A stretch of 59,245 nt of DNA, counting the filler, from Platydemus manokwari (lineage: Eukaryota): NCBI GenBank assembly GCA_037951405.1. It is 6 parts of 6 records of this genome, joined end to end, with 100 filler letters (N's around TTAATTAATTAA, not from the genome) between each part and the next. Parts side by side here need not be neighbours in the genome. Positions count along the whole stretch, not along the records: positions 49,944 to 59,245 come from JBBMOY011269095.1; 5 more parts are not named here. One strand, 5' to 3'. Position numbers and translations under genes: made by a program. Of the stretch, positions 56,901 through 58,479 are shown one piece after another (the first letter of the stretch is position 1; each line of letters opens with the position of its first letter). The notes below the pieces were generated by a model that ran no database searches, was not told the origin of the DNA, and saw only the letters and a list, made by a program, of their open reading frames with translations.

Positions 56901-56935
56901 TATATAAACAAATTAAAAATAAAAGCTAGTCAGTA
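56901..56935 (+). promoter_or_regulatory. TATA box plus Inr core promoter
   Basis: TATATAAA at 56901 and TCAGT at 56930-56934 (predicted +1 A at 56932, so TATA at -31), 24 nt upstream of an ATG followed by a GTAAGA donor. Confidence 0.6.
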
Positions 56936-56955
56936 TTTGAAATAAATTTTAAATC

Positions 56956-58012
56956 ATGATCGGAGACGTAAGAATTTTATTTTTATTATTTTGGGATAAA
57001 TCTTGAATGATTATTTAGAATTTAAACAAAATAATATTTGAATGTAAATTAACTATTTATGGTGATAATCGTTAACGACAATTGTATCGATTATAATCAT
57101 TGGTATATTTATAGTTATTATTATAATCGATTATAATATTTGATCTGAAATCAGTTATATGAAAATGAAAGCTCAAAATACGAAATATTTGTATTTATAA
57201 AACCCTCATGTGCATGAGAAATATGAATAATAATTTTCCACCAATTGAAAAAAAAATAAAAAAATAATAATTTCATTTGTATTTTCACATATTATTATAA
57301 CCATAAAATATATTAGTAAGTGTAATTATATTGATTGACTGACATCTTAAATTGGATATTGTATCAATCAATTATTTACTCAGTTTATTTAACTTTTCGT
57401 ACTTTATTCAGTACATCTTACTGCACCAAATAAAAGATTTTCTCAAATCCAACACAATATTTACAATTTTATTTTTAATATGACCAGTAAATTTTATTAA
57501 ATAATTATTAATAATTAATTTTATTGAAAAATATTGAGGGTTTGTCGATATATTTGTAAGGAAAAATGACATAAAAGATGTTTTAAAGAAAAAGATTGTT
57601 TTGAAAAAGGTTTTACAAGCTCTTAGCAATATTCTACTTAATTTTAAAACACGATTATAGATACTACATCATAATGAGGGAACAGCATTTATTGAAGTGT
57701 TATTTTTTATGATGAAATCAAATTTCGGTTAAAATATTTCATTATTGATTTTTAATTTCAATTAAATATTACACTGATTTTTTCGATCAATTTTCTGAAA
57801 ATTATAAATCATTTTAGAAGACGCTGACAATTTTGATATATTTTACAATGCTAGCGTTTGCTCACGGATTTTTGCACAAAGATACGTGCATTGCAAGTTG
57901 TAACCATTCTTTTAGACATTGCACAGGTCTTCCATCCCGACGGTATGAAATAAATGAGTGTGACCGAAAGAGAAATGAATGTCTTCAGCAATGTGAACGT
58001 TTAATGATTTAA
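56956..58012 (+). CDS. Small secreted six-cysteine peptide precursor, 68 aa, 2 exons (56956-56967, 57818-58012)
   Basis: MIGD|KTLTILIYFTMLAFAHG-FLHKDTCIASCNHSFRHCTGLPSRRYEINECDRKRNECLQQCERLMI*. Phase-0 GTAAGA...TTTTAG intron, hydrophobic signal ending in A-H-G, symmetric Cys spacing, AATAAA at 58090. Confidence 0.75.
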
Positions 58013-58479
58013 AATTAATTTCAGATGTTTCATCAATTTTATAAAAGTTCACAAAAGAGTAATCTTTTGCAATTTATAGCGTTTAAAACAATAAAGCGTT
58101 TAAAATATAAAGACAGAAATGAAAATTACCCTGACTTGCCGTATTATTAAATGTGTTGATCCTTTCCTCCATACTTATTTTATTCAAATTCTTTATTCAC
58201 ATTTTATTTTATAAAAATGATGAAAAGGAAAATACCTCAAAAATCTTTCCTAAACTTAATGACTTTAGTCCCACTACTGATTTTAAATCTCCATCAGCTC
58301 TAAGTGACTTAAGTTATGAGAGTTATGAAAGTTAGGCTCTTGAGGATAATATATTAACAGAGGATGAGATTTTAAAAGCTAAAGATATTATTGAAGATTT
58401 ACATGAATAAATTTTAAAGATTAAAGACGAGCAAAGTTCCTCCTTTATTACAAAACTGGAAAATAAATTGAGAAATGAA

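Follow-up and report, generated by a model that had tools for sequence, protein, structure and literature searches.

The window is a stretch of 59,245 nucleotides, filler included, and the analysis covered one piece of it, positions 49944–59245 (9,302 bases, no N, G+C content 27%). A candidate two-exon gene lies on the plus strand of this piece. The TATA box, TATATAAA, is located at 56901–56908 and begins at −31 relative to the A at 56932, the putative transcription start, which belongs to an arthropod-type initiator TCAGT (56930–56934). The putative 5′ UTR of 24 nt (56932–56955) contains no upstream ATG and carries an A at −3 of the start codon. Coding exon 1, ATGATCGGAGAC (56956–56967), comprises 12 nt and four codons (ATG ATC GGA GAC, Met-Ile-Gly-Asp) and ends in phase 0. 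The intron (56968–57817) is 850 nt long, runs from GTAAGA to ttttAG, has a G+C content of 20%, and shows a T-rich tract before the AG at 57816–57817. Exon 2 (57818–58012) begins exactly at this good acceptor and contains 64 codons followed by the stop codon TAA (58010–58012). The acceptor is a tandem site of the NAGNAG type (TAGAAG, 57815–57820), through which precursors could keep or lack the first Lys of exon 2. An AATAAA at 58090–58095, 78 nt past the stop, is a possible polyadenylation signal, and it counts as weak evidence because AATAAA occurs 33 times on the plus strand of the piece. The sequence-only reading had described the same arrangement, from the TATA at −31 through the 12-nt exon with its GTAAGA donor to the AATAAA, and every element was found in its place. 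We infer that the locus is transcribed and spliced and that its product is secreted; the disulfide pairing and the function given below are inferences as well.

Over both strands of the piece, TCAGT occurs 20 times and TATAWA 67 times, and TATATAAA is the sole TATAWA located 26–34 nt 5′ of a TCAGT. In the 3 kb 5′ of exon 2, exon 1 is the only ATG followed by an in-frame GTRAG without an intervening stop. An in-frame TAG stands directly 5′ of 57818, so an upstream extension of the exon-2 frame requires splicing; the alternative to an upstream exon is the internal in-frame ATG at 57848. In the list of ORFs called with the bacterial code, the exon-2 frame is present only as a TTG-started ORF of 59 aa. 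The gene had been described as missing from the ORF track, and a cut-off of 60 aa would explain this.

The product of exon 2 starts with 17 hydrophobic residues (57818–57868) ending in A-H-G, which matches the A-x-G cleavage motif; these codons would supply the hydrophobic core and cleavage region of a putative signal peptide. When frames were screened in a simple way for a hydrophobic start with a polar rest, the exon-2 frame passed, as did 0.3% of simulated frames. AlphaFold2 modelled the N-terminal helix of the exon-2 product at low confidence. By its residues, the N-terminal stretch appears signal-peptide-like. The remaining 47 aa (57869–58009) form the putative mature peptide, with a predicted mass of 5.66 kDa, a pI of 8.3, a GRAVY of −0.79, and 30% charged residues. 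Its six Cys are located at positions 7, 11, 18, 31, 38, and 42, giving the spacing C-X3-C-X6-C-X12-C-X6-C-X3-C. The palindromic six-Cys spacing claimed earlier for a mature part of about 47 aa is thus read exactly in the sequence.

The chance occurrence of these features was estimated in simulated DNA. The null was a second-order Markov sequence trained on the piece. Decayed genes are not represented in this null; therefore, it excludes coincidence but not a dead gene. The piece contains 21 open frames of at least 60 codons against approximately 11 expected under the Markov model, and the length of the exon-2 frame alone is ordinary. In 10 Mb of simulated DNA, 250 frames of at least 60 codons had at least six Cys, and a single one had the mirror six-Cys spacing. 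A further 30 Mb gave 673 frames of this length with at least six Cys and 104 with a hydrophobic start and polar remainder. Two frames in the further 30 Mb combined at least six Cys with a signal-like start, one had the mirror spacing, and none had both the mirror spacing and a signal-like start. A mirror six-Cys frame of at least 60 codons is therefore expected about once per 10–30 Mb of simulated DNA.

The promoter and first exon provide a line of evidence that is independent of the Cys pattern. The unit of TATA, TCAGT, and an ATG followed by an in-frame GTRAG was found 13 times in 20 Mb of simulated DNA, which corresponds to 0.002 per 3 kb. The piece contains exactly one such unit, on the correct strand and 850 nt 5′ of the exon-2 frame. 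The G+C content is 36.9% in exon 2 and 37.6% in the mature coding part, compared with 20.1% in the intron and 23.9% in the 3′ flank, so that the composition of exon 2 is coding-like. Only three stop-to-stop frames of at least 55 codons with at least six Cys were found in the piece, namely the exon-2 frame and two relics of transposon coding sequence. Since the other two are coding relics, a Cys-rich frame here points to sequence that codes or once coded. Coincidence explains this combination of features poorly; the length of the frame is itself unremarkable. The proposed gene model passed every test that is possible from sequence.

A single sequencing run, X1, was found to contain the locus. 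Its coverage was as even over the intron as over the exons (about 10–13x) and resolved into two haplotypes of approximately 5x each; the individual is heterozygous and differs from the window. The even intron coverage and the two haplotypes indicate that run X1 is genomic DNA. The mature coding part showed single-copy depth in this run. Across the three haplotypes (the window and the two in X1), the start codon, the donor, the acceptor, every Cys codon, and the stop are unchanged, and the last codon of exon 1 is GAC, AAC, or AAA. The haplotype differences in exon 2 comprise four bases and lead to Thr4Ile, Ile5Phe, and Phe18Ser (exon-2 numbering). All four are non-synonymous; they fall within the putative signal peptide or on residue 1 of the mature part. 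The lack of changes in the Cys region is no sign of constraint, since the 3′ flank (240 nt) has none either. At window positions 56950–57116 and 57726–57871, the X1 haplotypes differ by 5–7% from the window and from each other in the intron parts. Four joints in run X1 were considered as splices and rejected: their sides are 21–34 nt long and of low complexity, and none corresponds to the 56967/57818 junction.

The fold was predicted with AlphaFold2, run without an alignment. The exon-2 product gave a mean pLDDT of 70, with 72–85 for the portion after the N-terminal helix, and the 47-residue mature part alone gave a mean pLDDT of 82.4 and a pTM of 0.60. The model of the mature part has two helices, residues 2–19 and 26–44, joined by the loop G-L-P-S-R-R. 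In each of the three mirror Cys pairs the positions satisfy i + j = 49, which is the condition for residues that face each other in an antiparallel hairpin. A helical wheel with 100-degree steps puts the Cys of either helix within 40 degrees of one another, and the hydrophobic moment is directed to the Cys face. Against shuffled helices, the size of the moments does not stand out (p = 0.74 and 0.10), and amphipathicity was dropped as evidence. It follows that the disulfides, rather than a hydrophobic stripe, would form the core. The alpha-helical hairpin that had been inferred from the mirror-image spacing is thus backed by a fairly confident predicted model and by the Cys geometry. AlphaFold together with Foldseek had been suggested as a check. 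AlphaFold2 returned the two-helix hairpin, while Foldseek pointed to no family, with no match at E ≤ 0.001. VIA-align gave Z values of at most 6.8 and hundreds of tied generic helical hairpins, which indicate no family.

Relatives were sought with the exon-2 product as query. The word-index protein search returned no relative. The HMMER scan of 1.84 billion representatives returned no true relative and no BCR3-like protein. Its two matches were a translated tandem repeat (P0001), which aligns only two of the six Cys at approximately 24 bits per repeat, and a bacterial leucine-rich-repeat protein (P0002); both were rejected because their E-values arise from summed repeats. ESM Atlas gave no usable match, and the sequences of solved structures matched only YopM repeats, which were also rejected. 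In the JGI metagenome contigs, 453 pattern matches were obtained and none was confirmed. Pfam returned only DUF5437, which is non-significant (E 0.09, 13 bits against a cut-off of 27) and whose name was found in no paper, and it gave no match to the small-Tim or CHCH families. Rfam found nothing in the piece. The peptide is absent from the collections searched, which fits an unannotated orphan. Regarding the earlier statement that no specific family is recognised, the part on sequence stands, since no sequence relative was found; the part that needs correction is the framework, because the same outer Cys framework has been published for aphid BCR3.

Bacteriocyte-specific BCR peptides are secreted orphan peptides of 44–84 aa that are restricted to aphids (Shigenobu & Stern 2013, PMC3574423; Loth et al. 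2022, PMC9604261). The BCR3 subfamily is defined by CX3CX6CX21-25CX6CX3C, with six Cys and a bonding pattern listed as "Unknown" (PMC9604261 Table 3). It is present across Aphidinae and in Cinara, and the Cys spacing is stated to be fully conserved within BCR subfamilies (PMC9604261). At 5 μM, synthetic BCR3 makes E. coli permeable and kills it (PMC6594739), and BCR peptides are under study as biopesticide leads (PMC9604261). The window peptide and BCR3 share the six Cys with the outer spacing C-X3-C-X6-C ... C-X6-C-X3-C, few residues past the last Cys, and a short mature part after a signal peptide, which is putative here. Both are of the orphan type, with no detectable relatives outside a narrow lineage. 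The loop between the third and fourth Cys has 12 residues in the window peptide, whereas that of BCR3 has 21–25, so the window peptide lies outside the published range. The window peptide is polar and charged, whereas BCR3 is hydrophobic and rich in Ala and Gly. Compared by eye with the 20-odd BCR3 sequences in the supplement, nothing is common beyond the Cys, except perhaps a Glu before the fifth Cys. Membership of the BCR3 subfamily fails on loop length and on sequence similarity, as judged by eye, by HMMER, and by word search.

Other known architectures are also similar to the predicted fold. Plant six-Cys alpha-hairpinins, such as nigellin-1.1 (PDB 2NB2), have the motif C-X3-C-X3-C-X4-20-C-X3-C-X3-C and form a helix-loop-helix with three disulfides; the wider family includes antimicrobials and trypsin inhibitors (PMC11591084). 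The window peptide resembles them in the mirror-symmetric Cys motif, in the helix-loop-helix (predicted here), and in a size of about 30–50 aa, and its loop of 12 falls within their range of 4–20. However, the inner Cys step is X6 in the window peptide and X3 in the alpha-hairpinins, so the motif does not match. The alpha-hairpinins are plant peptides that are often cut from multi-module precursors, whereas the candidate here is a stand-alone animal-type gene with its own putative signal peptide. With no sequence similarity between them, the relation is one of analogy and not of membership. Mitochondrial intermembrane-space proteins of the twin CX3C and CHCH types (small Tims, Cox17-like) are likewise helical hairpins stapled by mirror-paired Cys, and the twin CX3C motif is present in the window peptide as the outer two pairs. 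These proteins lack a signal peptide, carry only two disulfides, and fall into recognisable Pfam families, whereas the window peptide has a signal-like N-terminus and no Pfam match. Aplysia attractin, a water-borne pheromone of a mollusc, is a secreted peptide of about 58 aa with two antiparallel helices, whose six Cys, spaced X8, X6, X5, X6, and X7, reportedly pair I-VI, II-V, and III-IV. It is an analogue in architecture and differs in spacing; among the solved-structure sequences and the fold-search matches, no attractin was found. The architecture is already known, since the BCR3 framework and the plant three-disulfide hairpins have been published. The disulfide-stapled helical hairpin is thus of a known kind, and no sequence relative of this particular peptide was found.

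The sceptical explanation is that there is no gene, and that the frame, the Cys pattern, and the upstream signals coincide in AT-rich DNA. Frames of at least 60 codons are common here (21 against about 11 expected), AT-rich sequence abounds in TATAWA, AATAAA, and hydrophobic stretches, and very many windows were scanned, so that rare coincidences surface. We nevertheless consider this explanation highly improbable. The joint Markov expectation of the frame features and the promoter-exon unit is approximately 1e-8 or less per piece, the local G+C content is 17 points above that of the intron, and the predicted fold is confident (pLDDT 82.4). An explanation that we rate somewhat higher, yet still as unlikely, is that exon 2 is truly coding but belongs to a gene that is dead or wrongly modelled. 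The in-frame ATG at 57848 might serve as the start and give a non-secreted 54-aa protein resembling the twin-CX3C type, a different upstream exon beyond the piece might be used, or the locus might be a recently silenced pseudogene or relic. That ATG exists, the neighbourhood is transposon debris with other Cys-rich coding relics, and the protein searches yielded no relatives that could show constraint. However, the frame starts exactly at a good acceptor and is intact in three haplotypes. The sole phase-compatible exon within 3 kb lies 24 nt 3′ of the only TATA and initiator pair in the piece, and Pfam gave no match to small-Tim or CHCH proteins.

A further explanation concerns only the family and function of the peptide and is compatible with the two-exon gene model. 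The peptide may be a divergent, short-loop member of BCR3, a subfamily of secreted six-Cys peptides that are made in bacteriocytes, have antimicrobial and membrane-permeabilising activity, and are thought to control the symbiont Buchnera. The outer framework CX3CX6C...CX6CX3C is identical (PMC9604261 Table 3), and the build of a signal peptide and a short mature peptide agrees (44–84 aa in BCR, 47 here). BCR orphan genes diverge fast, with Cys as almost the sole conserved residues. In a full-text literature search, CX3CX6C appeared in only one paper on secreted peptides, which was on BCR. The G+C content of 27% and the arthropod-type initiator are compatible with an aphid genome, although they are not specific to it. 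Against this, the 12-residue loop falls outside 21–25, essentially no identity beyond the Cys is visible by eye, a peptide with 30% charged residues stands opposite a hydrophobic, Ala/Gly-rich one, and HMMER returned no BCR3-like protein. Convergence is also easy. The X3 and X6 steps place Cys at i, i+4, and i+11, on one face of any alpha-helix, and a convergent framework is therefore plausible. We regard membership of BCR3 as doubtful, though less unlikely than a wrong model or a dead gene.

In the reading that we prefer, the locus holds an unannotated gene of two exons, intact and present in one copy, that encodes a secreted six-Cys hairpin peptide. We estimate the probability of this reading, fold included, at roughly 65%. 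The TATA/TCAGT core promoter would drive a short transcript, in which the four-codon exon 1 would be spliced in phase 0 over the 850-nt intron to exon 2. The two exons together would make a signal peptide of approximately 21 residues, cut after A-H-G, and cleavage would release a hydrophilic, mildly basic peptide of 47 residues. This peptide may fold as an antiparallel two-helix hairpin whose Cys, all on one face of their helix, pair C1-C6, C2-C5, and C3-C4, and its core would consist largely of these disulfides. Target binding would then be open to the G-L-P-S-R-R loop and to the polar surfaces of the helices. Since the peptide is hydrophilic, with 30% charged residues and a pI of 8.3, a binding peptide fits better than a membrane-lytic one. 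It is most likely a secreted binding or defence peptide, which might act as a ligand, an inhibitor, or an effector, or be directed at microbes or symbionts like aphid BCR3.

We speculate, more tentatively, that the peptide may be the first known representative of an undescribed family of animal peptides, alpha-helical hairpins with three disulfides and the framework C-X3-C-X6-C-X12-C-X6-C-X3-C. Such a family would reveal either that the BCR3 fold is a helical hairpin or that the framework originated independently. In that case, the exposed Arg-Arg of the loop may be a processing site that gives a two-chain peptide, or a contact for a target protease or receptor. This proposal is possible rather than probable.

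Small, lineage-specific, secreted Cys-rich peptides routinely escape gene callers; they include symbiont-control peptides, antimicrobials, components of venom and saliva, and pheromones. The locus is a clean example, with a 12-nt coding exon and a 64-codon exon amid transposon debris. If expressed, the gene would contribute a compact animal scaffold, a helical hairpin with three disulfides, and would hint at how the aphid BCR3 framework folds, for which no disulfide pattern has been published. We rate the value as moderate, since hairpins of this architecture are known and there are many such orphan peptides.

The neighbours had been described as decayed transposons, and mariner-like, non-LTR, and gag-type relics were indeed found in the piece. 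Taken with the TCAGT initiator, these relics suggest an animal genome, probably that of an arthropod. An internally deleted mariner-like element of approximately 560 bp is located at window positions 53236–53796. Its terminal inverted repeats share a perfect 23-nt core (53261–53283 and 53750–53772), their outer arms start with ACGGTGCGATTCATAAGTCTCCG, and ATACAT is present on both flanks. The interior retains short relics, with stops, of the N-terminal helix-turn-helix and of the C-terminus of the transposase. The two Cys-rich coding relics are located at 54321–54563 and 56206–56475 on the plus strand. One has a Cys/His motif with 7 Cys, as at the C-terminus of non-LTR reverse transcriptases, and the other is a decayed gag-type zinc knuckle with 9 Cys. 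Pfam gave no match for either relic, and no protein in a large collection shared words with the reverse-transcriptase relic.

An inverted repeat of 23 nt, 91% complementary, is formed by 56935–56957 and 58004–58026, spanning the leader and ATG on one side and the stop on the other. It could pair the ends of the mRNA. It is probably due to chance, because the AT-rich piece contains 21 similar pairs and no target-site duplication is present; the latter also led us to reject the repeat as transposon ends. A very high-copy repeat extends from approximately 58250 to at least 58500 and starts about 240 nt past the stop of the gene. The summed contig depth in run X1 climbs from approximately 13 to 1,200–35,000 in this repeat, which holds short coiled-coil-like frames with stops.
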